A stretch of DNA of 64,000 bases from Mytilus trossulus (GCF_036588685.1 NC_086381.1:53320001-53384000); one strand, 5' to 3'. Numbered from the stretch's first letter, positions 11,020 to 19,968 are shown. Numbers and translations: made by a program. The notes: generated from the letters alone by a model not told the origin.

Positions 11020-11130
11020 AACTGATTTTCATAGTTCGTTTTTATGTTGTACTGTTGTACCACTGTCCCAGGTTAGGGGGAGGGTTGGGATCCCGCTTAC
11101 CGTGTTTAACCCCGCCACATTATTTATGTA
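11020..11130 (+). repeat. 5' part of dispersed repeat family B (host of both LINE insertions)
   Basis: Colinear with the uninterrupted copy at ~39425-39800; continues at 19559-19567 and 25831-26066. Confidence 0.85.
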
Positions 11131-11158
11131 CTTCCAGTGAGTAGGAAGTTCACGAGAT

Positions 11159-11168
11159 AACATGGCGG
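11159..11168 (+). promoter_or_regulatory. YY1-type motif AACATGGCGG near the LINE-A 5' end (candidate internal Pol II promoter)
   Basis: Matches AANATGGCGG ~30 bp inside the element, after an ACTTCC/GGAAGT hairpin. Confidence 0.4.
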
Positions 11169-11561
11169 ACTGATTTTCACTGCACAGAAAGAAGACAATA
11201 TTATTGAGTTTCCTAAGTGTTGCACTCCACTTAAATCAAAAACAATTGTCTATATTGAGCACGATAGTAACGTTCACGTTTGAACTTAAATTTAATTTAT
11301 TTAAATCGATTTTTAGAAACAATATTGACATTTTCTGATCGATTGAATTTCCCGCCTTATTACGCGGGTCATTTGAGTTCACTTTTCAAGTCTTCCGTCC
11401 ATTGCTAGCTCATTTTTATTATTTTATATTTGCAATTCGTATTTAAATGTTATTTAACTAAAAAACTAAACCCTGCCAAGGCCCAAATTTTCTTGGAATC
11501 TTGTAGCCGGCTGTTCCTGATAGTACCACCCCCCCTCTTTTGTCAACAATATCGAATCTAT

Positions 11562-12317
11562 ATGTCCGAGACAAAGCTAACAAAATATCTCAGAACACAT
11601 AACTTTGTGCCTCCAACAGGACAAACAAGACGGCGCCCTGTCATTTTATCTGACAGCAAAGGATTTTCATTACGAAACAATATCATAAGTCCATTTGACC
11701 AAAATATTATATGGTGGTGCAAGCAAGGTGTGACAATTGAGCAAAGTTTTGCCTGGCTCAAAAGAAATCTTCCCACTAAATTATATGAAATTGGAGACAT
11801 TGCTCTATATGTCTGGCTTGGTACATGTAATCTGACAACCAAAGAAAAATCCTCAAAATACATATCTATTACAACTGATAATTCTGATACTGTTGACAAA
11901 GTTATCTCCTGTATTGATGACATCAAGAACTATATACAAGATTTTCCACAAGTCAAACTTATTTTCCTTGAAGTACCAGTATACTCAATAAAAGCTTACA
12001 ATCAACATCAAAAACACTCCGACCCGAAAACTTTCAAGCAACAAGACGAAACACTTGCAAATCAAGTCTGGCAAGTAAATGAGAAAATAAGAGCTACAAA
12101 CCAAATCTTAAATACACGCTCACCTAATTTTTCACTTTTCCTACAAGCCCGCAAACAACACCGTACACGGTCAAGAGTCGAAGCCTGGGAATACTTCAAT
12201 TACAACCTGTACAGGGACGGGATCCATCCTGGCCAGAATCTAGCAAAAGTTTGGTTACGTGAAATAGCAGAAAGAATAAAAATTGATTGCTGGAGCAAAT
12301 CTGAAGTTAAATCCTAA
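11562..12317 (+). CDS. LINE-A ORF0: SGNH/GDSL-type esterase (~251 aa; first ATG at 11562, frame open from 11430)
   Basis: Block I ILSDS, block II KQG, block III WLGTCN, block V DGIHP. Confidence 0.8.
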   Translation: MSETKLTKYLRTHNFVPPTGQTRRRPVILSDSKGFSLRNNIISPFDQNIIWWCKQGVTIEQSFAWLKRNLPTKLYEIGDIALYVWLGTCNLTTKEKSSKYISITTDNSDTVDKVISCIDDIKNYIQDFPQVKLIFLEVPVYSIKAYNQHQKHSDPKTFKQQDETLANQVWQVNEKIRATNQILNTRSPNFSLFLQARKQHRTRSRVEAWEYFNYNLYRDGIHPGQNLAKVWLREIAERIKIDCWSKSEVKS

Positions 12318-12338
12318 ATTCTTATACTTATATTTAAC

Positions 12339-12815
12339 AGATACAGGTCAGTCTGCATGGGATGCCAAGCTAACTAGGTTCTGTATCTAAAACTGGAACA
12401 ACATACACAACAGCAATAGTACATTGTTTGTATATAAAAACCTTGTCCGTCAGATAGAATACCAACATATAACTGAAATTTAACATCTATAATATTTTTA
12501 CTCTTCTCACAACAAAAAGTTTATTATACAGACTGCATGGGATGCCAAGCTAACTGCTATTATAAACTTTAGAATATGATAAATTCTAATAGAATTTAAG
12601 AAAATAAAATTAGTAAAACCAGCCTCAAAGACACATAAATAAGTATATTAATCCGTAGCTTCAAATTCAATAGTCATACATATAACAAATATAGACCAGT
12701 CTGCATGGGATGCCAAGCTAACTGATTCTGTACCTAAAACACCTTCGTAAGAGCTTATTATCCTCTCAACAAATAGTTTTGATACAGACTGCATGGGATA
12801 CCAAGCTATCTGTCA
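12339..12815 (+). ncRNA. Four structured hairpins (core CTGCATGGGATRCCAAGCTA) in the ORF0-ORF1 spacer
   Basis: Cores at 12353, 12533, 12701 and 12789, each with a different but self-complementary basal stem. Confidence 0.8.
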
Positions 12816-12889
12816 TAATAAACATTAAATATACAACCAATTTATAGACAAAGAAATAAATAAATAAAAGATACAATAACTTTATCAAC

Positions 12890-15394
12890 ATGGGCTCCAG
12901 GGAAATAACAAGGCCTACAAGAACTAGACACCCTCCCATGACATACACACCAAGTGTAACTCGATCACATGGGAATAAGCATATGTCCTACAGGCTAAAT
13001 GCCAAGAAGGCACTAGATAAGAAAATTGATGCAACAGACAGGGATCACTCCTGTGATATGGAATTTAAAGATGGTACACTAGTCATAACATGCAATGCAG
13101 GAGCTTATGAAATCTTGAAATCCTCCATATATAAATATTACGACCAATCTGAAGATAGAACATATAGGCTACACACCAAAACAAGCAAGTCAAGTCTACC
13201 AGATGTCAGCAAACAACCAATGATAGTTGAGGAATCATTATCTGTCAAAAATAGAGATCCATCCTTGTCTAGTCGTCAGCTATTTAGAATAAACATGTTC
13301 AACACCACATGTAGAATCGATGCTAACGGATATATGGTACAAACATTTATTCAAGAAGACCTCGATAAAATATGCGAAGAACTATTGGTCAATAAATCAT
13401 ACTCTGAGCTAAATAACAAAATCAAGCAAATGTGTAAGCTCACTAAAGACCAAATAAATAATCCAAAAAAGGGGCAAGCTAAATCCATCTTATCAGCTAA
13501 GCCCATACTCAACAAAACTGTGCAAACCAATACTTCCACAGGTAACAGTGATAAGGACAAGAAAACGTGTGTTATTAAACAGCATTCTCACCATATAGTT
13601 CAAACACAAGTTGAGCTAAATGATTATAACCAAGATAGTCATAACCATCAACCAAAAACAACACATAGATTAATGACCACCAATGATAAAGATCTATGCG
13701 ACTCTAGCCCTACACGTATAAACAGTCATTATAACTCAATTACTAGTCTAAATGATGAACTTATTGACTCTGAGTTACACACACTTTCTCGTGAAGGCGA
13801 AGAAACAACAGATGAAATCTGCATAGTATGTGGATCTGCTATTATAGATGAAAATAATGTAGAATGTACAATATGTGGACAATGGCTGCATACTGTTTGC
13901 GAAGGAATATCCGAAAACTCGCTCAATAACCATACAGCCTACGTATGCTCGTCATGCAGAATCCTAGACGATACAATTCCATATGACGAATCACTGCATA
14001 ATGAAATGATCCAACAAAGGGATGAAACCCATCCAAAACAGCTAGTATATAAAGCAAAGAGTCAACAGGATACTGACGCTATAAAAATATGCCATACAAC
14101 TGAAGCTGAAGCAGAAAAATCTGATCCATGCCTACCTGTTCTACCAGAATCAGCAGTTAAAGAAGATCTTACCAAAAATAATATACATATTCCACCTATT
14201 GAAGTGAAAACCAAACCAAAGCGAACAAAAAAGAAGGACAATCTAGAACAAACTCATCTTGAATTACAACTGGCTGAAAGTCAAACAAAAATCAGCAATC
14301 TTCAAACAGTCAATCAGGAATATAGACAAACAATTGACTTACTATCATCAAAATTAGGCATACAATCTCCATTAGACAACAACAGCCAACTTCCATTTAA
14401 CCAACAAATCCATCAGCTTGAAGTGAAATTTGAAGGGCAAATTAATAAAATGAAACTGGAGTTTGAGCATCAACTTAACATCATATCCATTCAAATGAAA
14501 CACAATACAGAAATCAATGAGCTGAAATGTAAACTTCATCATATGGAAAATGAATGTAAACAACATAAATCTACCATAAGTGGAAATCAACAACCACCTA
14601 GTCAATCTCCACAGATGAATACTCAATTCACTCCATTTCCAAGATGTCAGAATGGGAACTCAAATCAACAAACTCAACAACCACTAAACCATCCACATAC
14701 ACCTGGGCTACAGTGGACAAGACCTCCAATATGGACTAAACCACCACAATACCAAGCACCTATTGGACAGGATAGACCACAGAATGAGAACTTTCCTCAA
14801 CAGGCACTAAACAATCCACAGATACCTGGTGTACAATATACAAGACCTCCAATGTGGACTAGACCACAACCCTATCAAACACCTATGGGATTGGTATTCG
14901 CCCCATATGCTCCTCATATGCAACAACAAAAAACACACATAAGCTATGATACAAGGCATAAAAATGTTCAACCACCTCGCCAAAGAGTAAATACCGAAAC
15001 GCAAGGACAAAAACGGTCCAGAATGCAAAGAAATCATCAAAAACTGGCGAAAACCACTAACACCAATAGTGAACAAGTTTACAAGCAACAAACTCTCCAT
15101 CAAGTGCAAGAAAATCAGGAGCCAAACCAAAATTCTCATCAAAATCTGGTACAAACTCCAGAATCAAATCAGGCTAACACCCAAATAAGGGATGGACATG
15201 TATATACAGAACATGATATGGACACATCTCATAGTACATGTAAACCAGATATTCCACCGTCTAGAAGTAAATTACATCATAGAAGTATTTCGGAACCAGC
15301 CTTAAATAATGAACAAATAAACTCAAACAAGCCTTTTTTAGGAGCAGGCAGAGCCTCATCAGTAAACTGGACAATAAACCACATGAATTTATAA
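12890..15394 (+). CDS. LINE-A ORF1: conserved N-terminal domain, PHD finger, coiled coil, Q/P/N-rich tail (834 aa)
   Basis: CIVC...CTICGQWLHTVC...CSSC (C4HC3); N-terminal similarity to LINE-B ORF1. Confidence 0.88.
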   Translation: MGSREITRPTRTRHPPMTYTPSVTRSHGNKHMSYRLNAKKALDKKIDATDRDHSCDMEFKDGTLVITCNAGAYEILKSSIYKYYDQSEDRTYRLHTKTSKSSLPDVSKQPMIVEESLSVKNRDPSLSSRQLFRINMFNTTCRIDANGYMVQTFIQEDLDKICEELLVNKSYSELNNKIKQMCKLTKDQINNPKKGQAKSILSAKPILNKTVQTNTSTGNSDKDKKTCVIKQHSHHIVQTQVELNDYNQDSHNHQPKTTHRLMTTNDKDLCDSSPTRINSHYNSITSLNDELIDSELHTLSREGEETTDEICIVCGSAIIDENNVECTICGQWLHTVCEGISENSLNNHTAYVCSSCRILDDTIPYDESLHNEMIQQRDETHPKQLVYKAKSQQDTDAIKICHTTEAEAEKSDPCLPVLPESAVKEDLTKNNIHIPPIEVKTKPKRTKKKDNLEQTHLELQLAESQTKISNLQTVNQEYRQTIDLLSSKLGIQSPLDNNSQLPFNQQIHQLEVKFEGQINKMKLEFEHQLNIISIQMKHNTEINELKCKLHHMENECKQHKSTISGNQQPPSQSPQMNTQFTPFPRCQNGNSNQQTQQPLNHPHTPGLQWTRPPIWTKPPQYQAPIGQDRPQNENFPQQALNNPQIPGVQYTRPPMWTRPQPYQTPMGLVFAPYAPHMQQQKTHISYDTRHKNVQPPRQRVNTETQGQKRSRMQRNHQKLAKTTNTNSEQVYKQQTLHQVQENQEPNQNSHQNLVQTPESNQANTQIRDGHVYTEHDMDTSHSTCKPDIPPSRSKLHHRSISEPALNNEQINSNKPFLGAGRASSVNWTINHMNL

Positions 15395-18300
15395 TAGGAA
15401 CCATCAATATTCAAAATATAAAAGGCAACACCCTGTATCTTAATTCAATCCTGGATACAGTGCAAATTCTATGTATACAAGAACATTGGCTGCTATCTTT
15501 GGAAAAAAATATAGCAATAGAAATAAATAAAAAATTCTCGTCAAATATCAAATCAGTGGATGACGAAAACCCACTAATAGACTTTAAATCTATCCGTGGC
15601 TACGGAGGAACAGCAATTCTGTGGCAGAAAGATCTAAACAACACAGTTAATATAATGCCGGATGGGAATTCTCGTATTCAAGTGATAACAATAAACAGCA
15701 GTCCAATTGCAACATGCTTAATTAATACCTATATGCCATCTGCACAGAGTAGTGGGGACATTGAATATAAAGATACACTAGATCAAATCTCCGAAATTAT
15801 GGATAAGTATAGAGAAACATACCAGATAATTTTATGTGGTGATATGAATGCGTCTTTACATCGTGACAATAGGAAACGGGACACCGTCTTTGGAGAATTC
15901 AAAAACATAAACAATCTCCATATACCAGATGGTTATCCAATAAAGCCAACCTTTTTTCATCACAATGGCAAATATACCTCACAAATTGACTATTTCTTGT
16001 TTGATGAAAGAATTATACAGCAATCAAATCCAAATGTGAAAATAGCTATGAGGCATCCTACAAATACCTCTGATCATACTCTAGTCACTGCAAATATGGC
16101 TCTAAAGGTTAAAAGATGTTCTCTACGACCTGTCAAAATATATACAAGGCCAAACTGGAGAAAATGCGACAAAAGCCTCTACAAGTCAACTATTGAAAGT
16201 AGTCTAGACAATACATCTGGAGAAAAGAAATTCTCGGGTACCGTAGAATCACGTATACAAAAATTGGAATTAACACTTCATAAAGCTGGTACAAAATCTA
16301 TTCCGAGCTACAGGAAGCTGAAAAAACTAAAATCTGTTGGGAAAGGCATATGGAATAGCAAAATTAGCCAAGCATCTAAAGAAGCAAAGTCTGCACATAG
16401 GAACTGGATAGATAAAACCAACAAAAATGAGGATGCAGATCAAGAAAAGCTGGCTCTCAAAAACAAAAAACGTCATCTGAGACAACTACAGAGACAGGCA
16501 CATGCATCAAAGAAGGAAAAGTTCATAAATGAAATCATGCAAGCTTCAGAAAAAGACAGCAAAACATTCCATAAATTAATAAAGCAACAACGATCTAATC
16601 ATTCATCAAATACTGACGTTCTTTACATTGGAAATGAGAAATTTGAAGGAGAAAGTATTCTAAAAGCATGGACAATACATTTCGAAAAACTCGGAACACC
16701 AAATCATGACAAAAATATCTTTGACCTGGAACGCTTCCACTTGGCTAAATTACAAAATGACATCATTTTTGAAAATCAACATTCCAAAAAAGAAATTAAA
16801 CAAGCAACACCTGAAGTAGTTAAAAGTGCAATTAAGAACCTAAGCACTGGCAAAACATCAGACGAAAATGGTATATGTTCTGAACATTACAAATATGCTG
16901 TAGATGAATTATCAGAAGAAATCGCAAGCATAATCAATGATATTTTCTCCGATTTGGATGTTCCAAAAAATCTAAAAAATGGTTTATTAACACCTGTTCT
17001 TAAAAAGAAGAAGGATAAAACCGTACCTGGAAATTACAGGGGAATTGTTGTAACAAGTATCTTTTCTAAAATCTTTGAATCAATCGTTAAAGGAAGGCTA
17101 GAATATGAGCTACTACCATCGCAAAATCCATTACAGAGAGGGTTTACAGAGGGCGCATCAAGCCTCTTTGCAGCCTTTATTACAACTGAAACTATTCTAA
17201 TATATCGTCTTCTTCAAATATTATTAGAACTTGTTGCACTGGATGCAGAAAAGGCATTTGACACCCTGAGTCATGAGATCATGTTAAATAAGCTTTATCA
17301 TGATGGAATTGAGGGAGATATGTGGATCCTACTACGGAACATCTATCAAGATCTGTCTCTCAAAATCAAGTGGAATAATGAAACATCAGAAAGTATTAAT
17401 ATCATGCAAGGGGTTCGTCAAGGAGCAAAATTATCATCTCTGCTATACAAGCGATACAATAATACCATTCTGAATGCAATATCCAGTAGTAATCTAGGCG
17501 CAAAAATAGGCAACATACAAGTAGGCTCTCCTACATGTGCGGACGATATTGCCTTACTGGGTGAGCGGTCAGATTTACAGGCAATGCTCAATATTATAGA
17601 CTTCCACACTAAAAGAGACATGGTTAAAATTAATCCAGACAAATCAGAGATAATGTGCGTATCCAAAGGATTAAAGCAACAAACGCATTCATACAGCTTC
17701 AATGGAAAAGAAATAAAAAGAGTAGAAAAGCTGAAGCATCTAGGTATCACCAGGGCAACAAATGGCAAAGTCAACTTGGACGAAAGGCTAAAAACTGGCC
17801 GGCAAACTATATATGCCTTGCTAGGTTCTGGCCTACATGCCAGAACAGGAATGTCACTGCTGGTACTTAAAAAGATCTGGAAAACATATGTTGTCCCCCG
17901 CTATCTTTATGGGCTCGAAGTACAAATATGCATGAAAAAGGATGTATCTGAACTAGAAAAGTTACAGAGGAAAATGTTCAAACAATTTCAATGTCTACCA
18001 GATAGGACTGCATCTGCAGCAGTATATATACTAATAGGAGCTGAACCCATTGAATCGGTACTGGACAAAAACATGCTAGCCTTATTTCTTTCAATTTCTC
18101 GCCTAGATGGCTCAATAGAACATCAAATCCTAGAATGGGAACTAGAAATCAGCACAGAATTTGACAATTCCTTCATCTGTCGTATAAGCAAAATTTTACA
18201 AAAATATCAACTCCCAACAGCAGAAGAAATTATGAAAAATCCTCCATCAAAATATATTTGGAAAAAACAACTTCAAAAAGCCATAAATGATTACTGGTCT

Positions 18301-18816
18301 TCAATTTGGACAGAAGAATGTAATACAAAACCAACACTCAAACATTTATCGTTGCAAAATAATCCGGTAAATAATCCGCATAACATTTGGAAATGTGTTC
18401 GAAATAATCAATATGACATCAAAAAAGCGGAATTGAAATGTAAGCTAGTAACTGGTACATACATGCTTCAAAGTATAAAAGCAAAATTCAGTAAAAATAT
18501 AGTACTGCCTGACTGTAAGCTATGTAAGGACAATGATGAAACCCTTGAACATTTTCTCCTGGAATGTACTAGGCTCGGTGATGTACGACAAAAATGCATG
18601 GCGAAGCTAGTCAACAAGCTAAGAGAGATAGAAGGGGGTGGTACAATCGACGTCAGTAATGATGAAATACTGATAGAAATTATACTGGATTGTTCTAAGA
18701 CAAATATACTGAATAATCAGCCAATGGACAAGCTACTGGATATAGAAAGGCAAACACAAGATCTTTGCTACCAGTTACATATAAAGCGAACAAAACTTTT
18801 ATGTGACATCAAGTAA
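15313..18816 (+). CDS. LINE-A ORF2: AP endonuclease + reverse transcriptase + C-terminal CCHC (no AUG upstream of the endonuclease)
   Basis: GTINIQN, QEHWL, GDMN, IDY, SDH (APE); NYRGI, DAEKAFD, GVRQG, PTCADD (RT); CKLC...HFLLEC. Frame open from 15313. Confidence 0.95.
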   Translation, partial: TNKLKQAFFRSRQSLISKLDNKPHEFIIGTINIQNIKGNTLYLNSILDTVQILCIQEHWLLSLEKNIAIEINKKFSSNIKSVDDENPLIDFKSIRGYGGTAILWQKDLNNTVNIMPDGNSRIQVITINSSPIATCLINTYMPSAQSSGDIEYKDTLDQISEIMDKYRETYQIILCGDMNASLHRDNRKRDTVFGEFKNINNLHIPDGYPIKPTFFHHNGKYTSQIDYFLFDERIIQQSNPNVKIAMRHPTNTSDHTLVTANMALKVKRCSLRPVKIYTRPNWRKCDKSLYKSTIESSLDNTSGEKKFSGTVESRIQKLELTLHKAGTKSIPSYRKLKKLKSVGKGIWNSKISQASKEAKSAHRNWIDKTNKNEDADQEKLALKNKKRHLRQLQRQAHASKKEKFINEIMQASEKDSKTFHKLIKQQRSNHSSNTDVLYIGNEKFEGESILKAWTIHFEKLGTPNHDKNIFDLERFHLAKLQNDIIFENQHSKKEIKQATPEVVKSAIKNLSTGKTSDENGICSEHYKYAVDELSEEIASIINDIFSDLDVPKNLKNGLLTPVLKKKKDKTVPGNYRGIVVTSIFSKIFESIVKGRLEYELLPSQNPLQRGFTEGASSLFAAFITTETILIYRLLQILLELVALDAEKAFDTLSHEIMLNKLYHDGIEGDMWILLRNIYQDLSLKIKWNNETSESINIMQGVRQGAKLSSLLYKRYNNTILNAISSSNLGAKIGNIQVGSPTCADDIALLGERSDLQAMLNIIDFHTKRDMVKINPDKSEIMCVSKGLKQQTHSYSFNGKEIKRVEKLKHLGITRATNGKVNLDERLKTGRQTIYALLGSGLHARTGMSLLVLKKIWKTYVVPRYLYGLEVQICMKKDVSELEKLQRKMFKQFQCLPDRTASAAVYILIGAEPIESVLDKNMLALFLSISRLDGSIEHQILEWELEISTEFDNSFICRISKILQKYQLPTAEEIMKNPPSKYIWKKQLQKAINDYWSSIWTEECNTKPTLKHLSLQNNPVNNPHNIWKCVRNNQYDIKKAELKCKLVTGTYMLQSIKAKFSKNIVLPDCKLCKDNDETLEHFLLECTRLGDVRQKCMAKLVNKLREIEGGGTIDVSNDEILIEIILDCSKTNILNNQPMDKLLDIERQTQDLCYQLHIKRTKLLCDIK

Positions 18817-18971
18817 AAGAAATGTATGAAGGCTCTAATTATTTTAGATTTTAACTTTTATAAATCTAAAGTATATATTTAAATACTGAAATAGCAAATA
18901 AGTCTTACTAAAATGTTCTAGATTTTAACTATTAACGTTTTCAAGTAATATAACACCGAAATCGTAAATAT

Positions 18972-19100
18972 ATGGTGTGTACTGTCTGCATGGGATGCCA
19001 AGCTAACTAGTACACTCTATAATATCTTCAAATCAAGAGCAATATCCAATATAGTCTGTACAGTCTGCATGGGATGCCAAGCTAACTTGTATCAGTCTAT
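18972..19100 (+). ncRNA. Two more copies of the same hairpin in the LINE-A 3' UTR
   Basis: Cores at 18986 and 19065; stems GTGTACT/AGTACAC and ATAG.CTGTACA/TGTA.CAG.CTAT. Confidence 0.8.
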
Positions 19101-19968
19101 CAAGAAGTGCGTGATTTATACTTTTTAATGATAGCCTAGGCAGGGCACTTATAGTTTTATTAAATAAGCTGTAAATAACATTTTTATCATAATATAGTGG
19201 TGAACGCTATTGCCGCAATAGTTCTGTGTACATTTCTTATCGTGATATAGTATTTGCAACTTGTGCTGTGTACATTTTTATTGTGATACAAGTGGTGAAC
19301 GTTAGCTGCATACATTTTTACCGTGATATCGTGTTGATTCTTATTACCGCAATTGTGATGTGTACATAATATTTTTAACTTATTATCGTCGTAATATTTT
19401 AAGACTTTTAAAATATTTCTTTTAGTCGTACATATTTTAATGTAAATATAAAGATATCCGCAATCTCGGTGTGTAAATTAAATTGCTCATCCGATAAGTG
19501 GAGTGCTCCGATTAAACGGAGGTGAATACCTGTACAGAACAGAACAGAACAGAACTGATGTGCCTGTTTTTTGTTTGGTGGTTGAAGGTGGTGGTTGTGT
19601 AATTTATTGAGAGCCAGTTTTACAGATTTTACAGATTTTTACAGACTTGATAGTGTTTTAATGTGAACTTTTATTTCCTGTATTGCCAATGAGAACCCTG
19701 AATGATGTTTTAGCAAAGTGAAAATACATTTACTGCCATTTCTCGAAAGAAAATGAGATACACGAGACAAAGAAATAGCCGATTCATAGTCGGCATCTTG
19801 GTTTTATGAAGAAATTTTAAAGAAGTTTTTAATTAACAGTCCTTTTACCTTTTAAACATAGAACACTTTTAATATATAGTGAACAGTTTTAAGAAAGACA
19901 ATTGTTTTATTTAAACATTTTTTCCAAATCACTGTTTTTGAGTAGATACAACCAACAGTAAATTCAAA

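Follow-up and report, generated by a model that had tools for sequence, protein, structure and literature searches.

The window analyzed here, a stretch of 64,000 nucleotides of Mytilus trossulus DNA (GCF_036588685.1 NC_086381.1:53320001-53384000), contains a full-length LINE retrotransposon, LINE-A (11147-19555, + strand, as are all features described below), which is 99.6% identical over its whole length to a second copy (L036). Thirteen 5'-truncated or full copies of this family were examined and all end at 19544-19555. The first ORF of the element is ORF0 (11562-12317), which encodes a stand-alone protein of 251 aa with a predicted SGNH esterase fold. Pfam and a PDB sequence search found nothing, however, the SDSKG, GTCN and DGIHP blocks, corresponding to the Ser (block I), Gly, Asn (block III) and Asp-x-x-His (block V) motifs of SGNH hydrolases, are conserved, the AF2 model reached a pLDDT of 91.8, and the top hits of this model in Foldseek were GDSL/SGNH hydrolases (E 6e-7, prob 1.0), among them GDSL lipases and PAF acetylhydrolase. 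The catalytic activity of ORF0p is inferred from sequence and model alone. ORF0 is followed by a spacer (12318-12889), by ORF1 (12890-15394; 834 aa) with a PHD finger (PF00628, E 9e-6), and by ORF2 (15460-18816, the start given being the mechanical ORF start) with an APE endonuclease and a reverse transcriptase (PF03372, PF00078). The 3' end is formed by a conserved island (19442-19555) with an (ACAGA)n tail at 19534-19555, which is the likely start region of reverse transcription and is distinct from the hairpins described in the following.

The first-pass annotation had noticed a six-copy RNA hairpin within LINE-A, and this observation was confirmed. The 20-mer CTGCATGGGATGCCAAGCTA occurs exactly at 12353, 12533, 12701, 18986 and 19065, and with a single G>A exchange at 12789. 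No other match with up to three mismatches was detected in the window, and none appeared in 100 shuffles (0 expected). All six copies fold as GC-A-UGG(loop)CCA-A-GC above a CU/UA internal loop and a basal stem, with MFE values of -13.6 to -22 kcal/mol (z = -2.9 to -4.5). Four copies are located between ORF0 and ORF1: A1 (12339-12388, core 12353-12372; -19 kcal/mol, z -2.85, 47.2 bits in the covariance-model search), A2 (12516-12570, core 12533-12552; -16.9 kcal/mol, z -3.82, 50.3 bits), A3 (12690-12732, core 12701-12720) and A4 (12784-12813, core 12789-12808, loop GAUA). Two copies follow the ORF2 stop in the 3' UTR: A5 (18971-19021, core 18986-19005; -22 kcal/mol, z -4.45) and A6 (19051-19100, core 19065-19084). 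A3 to A6 were likewise recovered by the covariance model, whereas covariance-model searches did not find any copy in LINE-B, an element lacking ORF0. As a match to a catalogued family would have argued against the earlier proposal, the region 11500-19800 was compared to Rfam 15, including its ribozymes, IRE, SECIS, histone stem-loop, miRNAs and cis-regulatory elements. Even at E<=10 this only yielded five chance-level snoRNA or thermometer matches (E 1.3-3.8), none of which was located on a hairpin.

Some details of the earlier description required correction. It had been stated that the flanks of the copies share little sequence but always pair. Cognate arms indeed pair better than non-cognate arms in most copies, however, A1/A3, A2/A4 and A5/A6 are paralogous pairs of 82-91% identity (87% for A3 to the A1 region, 82% for A4 to the A2 region, and 91% over 43 nt for A6, a 79-nt duplicate of A5), indicating that the array arose by duplication, and A4 possesses a basal stem of only 5 bp. 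An invariant apex holds only among close relatives, as the terminal loop varies freely in related families. Finally, G-U pairs had been taken to favor the sense RNA. In the six copies, the sense MFE folds contain 3 G-U pairs and the antisense folds 11, so that these counts do not favor the sense strand. The sense fold is more stable in five copies and equally stable in one (A3), but never by more than 6 kcal/mol. In contrast, wobble changes in the core helix of relatives do favor the sense strand.

To determine whether the motif is restricted to LINE-A, related sequences were searched. A degenerate pattern gave 55 hits in the Mytilus genome and none for the reversed control, and at least 9 core variants were identified. 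The motif also follows ORF0 in 10 of 21 metagenome contigs whose ORF0 is only 33-57% identical; in this identity range it was found behind ORF0 in L051, L053, L054, L055, L057, L065, L066, L071 and L073 (working designations of the sequences compared). The first copy nearly always lies 4-76 nt after the ORF0 stop, and in three LINE families referred to as A (that of LINE-A), B and C the motif recurs in the 3' UTR; elements carry one to six copies. About 30 of 37 hits outside these three families are located downstream of an independently detected ORF0 on the same strand. LINE-B, whose ORF2 belongs to the same clade (31% identity), lacks both ORF0 and the hairpin. In a covariance-model search of the genome, in which only the 150 best candidates were scored, every hit that could be placed belongs to a LINE copy or lies next to an ORF0. 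No high-copy family and no SINE carrying the motif was found, and the motif occurs in tens of copies. However, about half of the ORF0-bearing contigs lack a detectable copy.

The comparison of these variants defined a module of about 30 nt. It consists of a CAGU/ACUG lower helix, a small internal loop (C-N opposite U-A, sometimes with one extra base), two G-C/C-G pairs, a single A·A mismatch, a 3-4 bp NGG/CCN helix and a loop of any sequence, and is usually extended below by a family-specific stem. The upper helix is 99.1% paired in 23 sequences. Pair 15-26 occurs as U-A (15), C-G (5) and G-C (2), and further variants add U·G and G·U pairs. No shuffle reached the observed covariation score, and slid controls gave 13-54% pairing. 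The A·A mismatch is present in most variants, exceptions being G-C in L057 and in the C8:16806035 type, A·C in L065 and C·A in B2 (a family-B copy). The terminal loop is the least conserved part, the loops observed being GAUG, AAUG, GAUU, AUUG, GUUUUU, GCUCUU, GUAUUUU, AUUUU, GAAGU and others. All copies within one element share the same loop variant, which holds for GAUG in A, AAUG in B1-B3 despite unrelated stems, GAUU in L051 and AUUG in L071. In the 3' UTR, families A and C share only two islands, the hairpin and the terminal ~110 nt, the latter with 76-82% identity.

We further analyzed the spacer between ORF0 and ORF1, which is 66-625 nt long in the elements compared. The last hairpin lies 8-90 nt before the ORF1 AUG, and minimal spacers of 66-127 nt hold a single hairpin. 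In LINE-A, seven of the eight ATG in the spacer are located inside hairpin cores, leaving 1 ATG in 460 unmasked nt against 5.4 expected. In the hairpin-positive spacers together, 6 AUG were observed outside the hairpins against 25.7 expected (Poisson P = 4e-6), compared to 28-44 for the base permutations and 37 for CAT. The AUGs inside the family-A cores open only 3-codon or 6-11-codon sORFs. This depletion argues for scanning or reinitiation rather than internal initiation at ORF1.

The interpretation put forward in the first-pass annotation, a selected protein-binding array for RNP packaging, localization, processing or internal initiation that is possibly partnered with the esterase ORF, is only partly supported. 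The covariation, the conservation across LINE families with strongly diverged ORF0 and the island of conservation in an otherwise diverged 3' UTR support a selected RNA structure that belongs to no catalogued family and is tied to the esterase ORF. Not supported is the view that an invariant apex is the recognized part, as the lower helix, the internal loop and the A·A mismatch are conserved instead, and the basal stems are only partly free, as the proximal CAGU/ACUG is conserved in sequence. The list of functions is broad and remains hypothetical, and no evidence for processing was found.

In our best explanation, the six hairpins belong to a conserved cis-acting RNA module of a bivalve LINE lineage that encodes a free-standing SGNH esterase (ORF0) ahead of a PHD-type ORF1 and an APE-RT ORF2. 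Our analysis establishes the module, its architecture and its reading on the sense transcript, whereas its binding to a protein and its function are inferred. At a probability of about 0.4, we favor the hypothesis that the conserved helix, internal loop and mismatch form a specific docking site for a protein made by the element itself. The most attractive candidate would be ORF0p, which finishes translation 4-76 nt upstream of the first hairpin. In this view, copies after ORF0 and in the 3' UTR would nucleate RNP assembly in cis, and duplication would raise avidity. As the hairpins also reside in the AUG-depleted spacer, an occupied hairpin would probably also modulate reinitiation at ORF1, much as a phage operator hairpin couples packaging with translational control. 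The uniform loops within an element would fit an element-specific partner but can also come from recent duplication. ORF0p has a conserved basic stretch, RKQHRTRSR, but no recognized RNA-binding domain, and the basic patch is equally present in ORF0 relatives without the hairpin. In addition, the core is far better conserved than the proteins (ORF0 33-45% identical), which a conserved host partner could explain equally well, and RNA-seq gave almost no reads. An extended, operator-like version, in which the free-standing esterase would bind the hairpin just after its own stop codon and in the 3' UTR and thereby package the RNA in cis, tether it to membranes and at the same time gate ribosome reinitiation on ORF1/ORF2, is not excluded but rather unlikely; if true, it would provide the long-puzzling LINE esterase with a defined RNA partner.

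The main rival, which we consider less likely, is a reinitiation element that holds the 40S subunit or eIF3 on the RNA after translation of the long ORF0, so that scanning resumes and ORF1 is translated from the same tricistronic RNA. The position of the hairpins between the ORF0 stop and the ORF1 AUG, the AUG depletion, the co-occurrence with the extra upstream ORF and the strong sequence conservation, which fits a host translational partner, support this reading. However, the copies kept under selection in the 3' UTR of families A, B and C have no ORF downstream, L053 has a copy in its 5' UTR, and stable hairpins in a scanned region would, if anything, slow scanning. Termination-reinitiation signals such as the calicivirus TURBS lie upstream of a stop-start overlap, while the hairpins lie downstream of the ORF0 stop. 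TURBS expose a motif complementary to 18S rRNA (UGGGA); scored by presence alone, without reference to the mussel 18S rRNA, UGGGA occurs in A, C, L051, L054 and L057 but not in B, L053, L055 and L065.

Still less likely, the hairpin may recruit a conserved host RNA-binding protein that stabilizes, exports or localizes the long intronless polycistronic RNA, e.g., by shielding the early ORF0 and ORF2 stop codons from nonsense-mediated decay, as is conceivable by analogy to the RSV stability element after gag, retroviral CTEs and the NXF1-binding element in the L1 3' UTR. The core is much better conserved than the element's own proteins, copies sit within about 160 nt after the ORF0 and ORF2 stop codons, and copy number varies as it does with additive elements. 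However, no hairpin follows the ORF1 stop in LINE-A although 4 kb of RNA lie downstream, the related LINE-B does without the motif, and loop variants that are uniform within but differ between elements are not predicted by a fixed host partner, although the loop may be irrelevant to binding.

Two further readings are very unlikely. A reverse-transcriptase recognition stem-loop of the stringent-LINE type would agree with the A·A mismatch and the 3' UTR copies, but these copies lie 450 to about 1300 nt from the 3' end, the terminal island and (ACAGA)n tail occupy the priming position, most copies are internal, after ORF0, no high-copy SINE carrying the motif was among the placeable hits of the 150 candidates scored in the covariance-model search, the loop is not conserved, and all 13 family-A copies end at 19544-19555 rather than at the hairpins. 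A processing signal (Drosha-like cleavage, a small ribozyme or a small-RNA precursor that splits or silences the transcript) would agree with imperfect hairpins of 45-65 nt repeated along the RNA, and with other, putatively ribozyme-like repeats noted in the same window. However, Rfam gave no ribozyme or miRNA match, the stems of 14-27 bp are shorter than the about 33-35 bp of animal pri-miRNAs, which have conserved arms and a variable loop, and the conserved block is the center of the hairpin while the distal arms vary. A contig of RNA-seq run X1 spans 11179-12904 without a break or a pile-up of read ends, at a read depth too low for a real test. That the hairpins are merely inherited palindromic by-products of local duplication is least likely, since, despite the recent duplicates and the uninformative 99% identity among family-A copies, the motif persists with compensatory changes where ORF0 is only 33-45% identical and spacers no longer align, forms an island in the diverged 3' UTR and is absent from the reversed control.

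Among known systems, L2-clade LINEs (eel UnaL2, zebrafish ZfL2-1/ZfL2-2) possess a 3' tail stem-loop bound by the tail-binding region of ORF2p in an element-specific manner, the stem of which is interrupted by an A-A mismatch in most zebrafish elements and by U-U plus a bulge in UnaL2 (PMC1636434, PMC4176376). The mussel hairpin shares the interrupted stem, but is mostly internal, occurs in 1-6 copies, is not next to the 3' terminal repeats, was not found in SINE tails and has a free loop, whereas the GGAUA loop of UnaL2 is essential. Schneider et al. (2013) proposed that esterase-type ORF1 proteins of CR1/L2-like LINEs, which lack a folded RNA-binding domain, target 'specific structural RNA elements' through basic peptides, a recognition of the arginine-rich-motif type (PMC3905857). 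No such element was identified in that work, and in ZfL2-1 the esterase is part of an ORF1p with a coiled coil, while here a structured element travels with a separate ORF0 ahead of a PHD-type ORF1. Translational coupling signals, such as the SART1 UAAUG with a downstream structure or the TURBS, similarly place an RNA structure close to the stop of an upstream ORF, but the mussel element lies after the stop, is followed by a longer spacer instead of a stop-start overlap, and has 3' UTR copies with nothing to reinitiate. The Vhc stem-loop of V-type SINEs in molluscs and arthropods (PMC4758252) is also a hairpin of about 37-39 nt with an internal loop, is highly conserved across retroposon families, and has CR1-like partner LINEs in oyster; the resemblance noted here is one of general form. 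The operator hairpins of the RNA phages MS2 and PP7 are not homologous and act outside a eukaryotic, scanning-dependent context, but the mussel hairpin may work alike, as a short hairpin recognized by a putative binder through its stem and bulge, placed just before the next cistron and serving both packaging and translational repression.

To verify the repeated hairpin described in the first-pass annotation, the 20-mer CTGCATGGGATGCCAAGCTA was searched across the 64-kb window. It was found at positions 12353, 12533, 12701, 18986 and 19065, and with one G>A exchange at 12789 (hairpins A1, A2, A3, A5, A6 and A4, respectively). No other match occurred in the window at up to three mismatches, and no match was produced by any of the shuffled sequences. 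Each copy folds as had been drawn, with UGG/CCA under a 4-nt loop, an A·A mismatch, GC/GC, a CU/UA internal loop and then a basal stem, at energies from -13.6 to -22 kcal/mol and z values between -2.9 and -4.5. The observation itself was therefore confirmed. A search against Rfam 15 gave nothing on or near the hairpins, even at E<=10.

The element carrying the hairpins, LINE-A, spans 11147-19555. A second copy is 99.6% identical over exactly that range, and all 5'-truncated copies end at 19544-19555 in an (ACAGA)n tail. The stretch just upstream of its 5' end (11020-11130) matches other loci (L009, L040) at 89-92%, independently of the LINE, and is a different repeat into which LINE-A is inserted. 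LINE-A has three ORFs: ORF0 at 11562-12317, ORF1 at 12890-15394 with a PHD finger, and ORF2 ending at 18816 with APE endonuclease and RT domains. ORF1 contains an internal direct duplication (14673-14890), in which 14673-14767 resembles 14796-14890 with about 81% identity between copies. ORF0 gave no match in searches of Pfam or of PDB sequences. However, it keeps the SDSKG, GTCN and DGIHP blocks, and its AlphaFold model (pLDDT 91.8) matches GDSL/SGNH hydrolases in a Foldseek search (E down to 6e-7), so that the reading of ORF0 as a predicted esterase holds and the fold was settled by structure prediction only. The protein, ORF0p, is 98% identical to an M. galloprovincialis protein. LINE-A has CR1/L2-like features (predicted esterase, PHD ORF1, APE-RT and microsatellite tail). 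The neighboring LINE-B is a relative (ORF2 31% identical, ORF1 N-terminus 32%) without ORF0, and covariance-model searches find no hairpin in it.

Comparison of the six copies showed that A1/A3 (87%), A2/A4 (82%) and A5/A6 (88-91%) are paralogous pairs. The four-copy array is thus a duplicated two-hairpin unit, and the 3' pair is a 79-nt duplication. The statement of the first-pass annotation that the flanks share little sequence is therefore too strong. The paralogues do differ by compensatory changes, for example U-A in A5 against A-U in A6 at the third basal pair, and U-A against A-U next to the core in A4.

To further determine how widely the motif occurs, the genome was searched for the core. 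The exact or near-exact core occurs about 55 times, and every placeable hit is in a LINE copy. Family A has three full-length and about ten truncated copies. Family B, with the loop AAUG and about 70% nucleotide identity in ORF2, carries two hairpins after ORF0 and one in the 3' UTR, each with a quite different stem, and families C and C12 each carry a 3' UTR copy. A degenerate pattern keeping only the conserved positions gave 55 hits, and none for the reversed control, and revealed at least nine core variants. A covariance-model search of the whole genome agrees with this. The hits were then compared with the ORF0 homologues found independently by protein search. Outside families A, B and C, the additional Mytilus families are known from matched cores and coordinates only, and about 30 of the 37 hits there lie on the same strand downstream of an ORF0. 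Most lie 4-76 nt after its end, in arrays of one to six, and five lie about 2.4 kb downstream, whereas the other seven have no ORF0 in the incomplete list of homologues used for this comparison. One ORF0-bearing family (G000:C8:76275052-76278345 and G000:C9:6195132-6198432, minus strand; genome, contig and positions) has three hairpins right after ORF0 and a second pair about 2.4 kb further downstream. Isolated copies of that pair occur elsewhere (C13:33794936, C21:1448727), and this may be a short or non-autonomous derivative, or represent hairpins after ORF1. At G000:C12:40867396-40873353 (locus L034 and beyond), three hairpin copies lie about 3 kb apart on the same strand, which looks like a tandem repeat of a LINE 3' portion.

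A scan of metagenome contigs with an ORF0 profile returned 23 loci with ORF0 33-57% identical. Of the 21 with enough downstream sequence, ten carry the motif just after ORF0 (L051 with two copies, L053 with three, L054, L055, L057, L065, L066, L071 with two, and L073). In L053, one of the three copies is located in the 5' UTR (L053:1-43), 57 nt before the ORF0 AUG, in addition to the two after ORF0. Some of the ORF0 relatives without the motif have other hairpins at the same place after the ORF0 stop, such as L058 (932-962), L064 (4750-4860) and L070 (496-515); in L064 these are two copies of UGGAAAC-loop-GUUUCCA. A post-stop hairpin may therefore be more general than this particular consensus.

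In 23 aligned copies, the upper helix is 99.1% paired, and the pair under the apical helix occurs as U-A (15 copies), C-G (5) and G-C (2). None of 500 shuffles reached the observed covariation score, and slid controls gave 13-54% pairing. The terminal loop is the least conserved part and appears as GAUG, AAUG, GAUU, GAUA, AUUG, GUUUUU, GCUCUU, GUAUUUU, AUUUU, GAAGU and others. The constant parts are the lower helix CAGU/ACUG, which is conserved in sequence and not only in pairing, the small internal loop, the G-C and C-G pairs, and the A·A mismatch, the latter with a few exceptions (G-C in L057 and one Mytilus family, A·C in L065 and C·A in the family B hairpin B2). Below the CAGU/ACUG helix each copy has its own extension, and cognate arms pair better than non-cognate arms in 11 of 15 copies even when the proximal 4 nt are left out. 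The description of an invariant apex above free basal stems is therefore true for the window but close to the reverse of the deep pattern.

The first-pass annotation had also proposed that G-U pairs favor the sense RNA. Folding energies were mixed and G-U counts (sense 25 against antisense 48) did not separate the strands overall. However, within the core helix several families have C-G changed to U·G or G-C changed to G·U. Those changes would be A·C mismatches on the other strand, and only one change goes the other way (L055). Together with the fixed orientation relative to the ORFs, this points to the sense RNA.

The first hairpin follows the ORF0 stop within 4-76 nt, and the last precedes the ORF1 AUG by 8-90 nt; the shortest spacers (66 and 127 nt) hold one hairpin. 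In seven hairpin-positive spacers from seven families, including 12318-12889 of LINE-A, L051:541-941 and L053:839-1462, ATG occurs outside the hairpins 6 times against 25.7 expected, while the five base permutations occur 28-44 times and CAT 37 times (Poisson P = 4e-6). In LINE-A, seven of the eight spacer ATGs sit inside the hairpin cores, where they open only 3-codon or 6-11-codon reading frames. The spacer is therefore very probably crossed by scanning ribosomes, suggesting that ORF1 is reached by scanning or reinitiation after ORF0 and arguing against internal entry at ORF1. Readthrough of the ORF0 stop into ORF1 was rejected as a general mechanism, as ORF1 is out of frame with ORF0 in LINE-A and in L054.

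Between families A and C the 3' UTR has diverged except for two islands, the hairpin and the last ~110 nt. The terminal island (19442-19555 in LINE-A; 76-82% to family C) contains its own small hairpin, CUCCG-AUUAAA-CGGAG, ends in (ACAGA)4.4 and is the likely reverse-transcription start signal. The 3' UTR of LINE-A also holds degenerate repeats of 40-134 nt downstream of the hairpins (19178-19367; for example 19178-19233 against 19312-19367, 77%). The repeated hairpin is thus a separate selected element 450 to about 1300 nt from the end. To detect transcripts of the element, public RNA runs of the species were examined. The raw-read runs gave only 0-5 reads on 11100-14099, without joints or pile-ups of ends, which is too thin to judge expression, splicing or cleavage. 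One contig of a run of uncertain type covers 11179-12904, spanning ORF0 plus the spacer, without interruption, but this likewise shows nothing about splicing, cleavage or expression level.

Taken together, the analysis establishes a conserved, covarying RNA module on the sense strand that is tied to the predicted esterase ORF and is placed after the ORF0 stop in a very probably scanned spacer, with further copies in the 3' UTR, whereas its role as a docking site for a protein is inferred. The functional interpretation of the first-pass annotation, a selected protein-binding array for RNP packaging, localization, processing or internal initiation, possibly partnered with the esterase ORF, is supported in part. 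We tentatively rank an element-encoded partner first, at a probability of about 0.4. This reading explains all the positions, including the 3' UTR copies and the 5' UTR copy in L053, and fits the uniform loop variant within each element. It also has direct precedent in LINE biology (PMC1636434, PMC4176376) and matches the published conjecture that esterase-type LINE proteins bind specific structured RNAs through basic peptides (PMC3905857). However, no link was found between the basic patch of ORF0p and the presence of the hairpin, as the patch is present with and without it. A reinitiation model is less likely but possible; it explains the position and the AUG depletion best, but not the 3' UTR copies. 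A conserved host partner for stability or export appears more doubtful still, although it would explain the strong sequence conservation. A role as the 3'-tail reverse-transcription priming signal was rejected on the basis of the distance from the 3' end and the separate terminal island, and processing or an absence of function are likewise disfavored.

Almost nothing is known about RNA signals inside multi-ORF LINEs, or about how esterase-type LINE proteins, which lack RNA-binding domains, find their RNA. The motif described here is short, conserved across deeply diverged families and physically tied to the predicted esterase ORF, and it has clear mutational handles in the A·A mismatch, the internal loop and the lower helix. 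It therefore gives a concrete RNA to test against ORF0p, ORF1p, ORF2p, eIF3 and the 40S subunit, and a test case for how three cistrons are translated from one eukaryotic RNA. In addition, it is a candidate new RNA family for Rfam-type catalogues and a marker for annotating this LINE lineage in molluscs. A literature search for the core sequence identified no paper. LINE RNAs of the 'stringent' type carry one protein-recognized stem-loop at their 3' end, and the nearest described structures are the 3' tail stem-loops of L2-clade LINEs, where the stem-loop is the reverse-transcription start signal, which the hairpin reported here is not, and, possibly, the Vhc stem-loop of mollusc V-SINEs. The present motif belongs with the cis-acting LINE RNA hairpins, among which it has a new location, a new consensus and a new companion gene.
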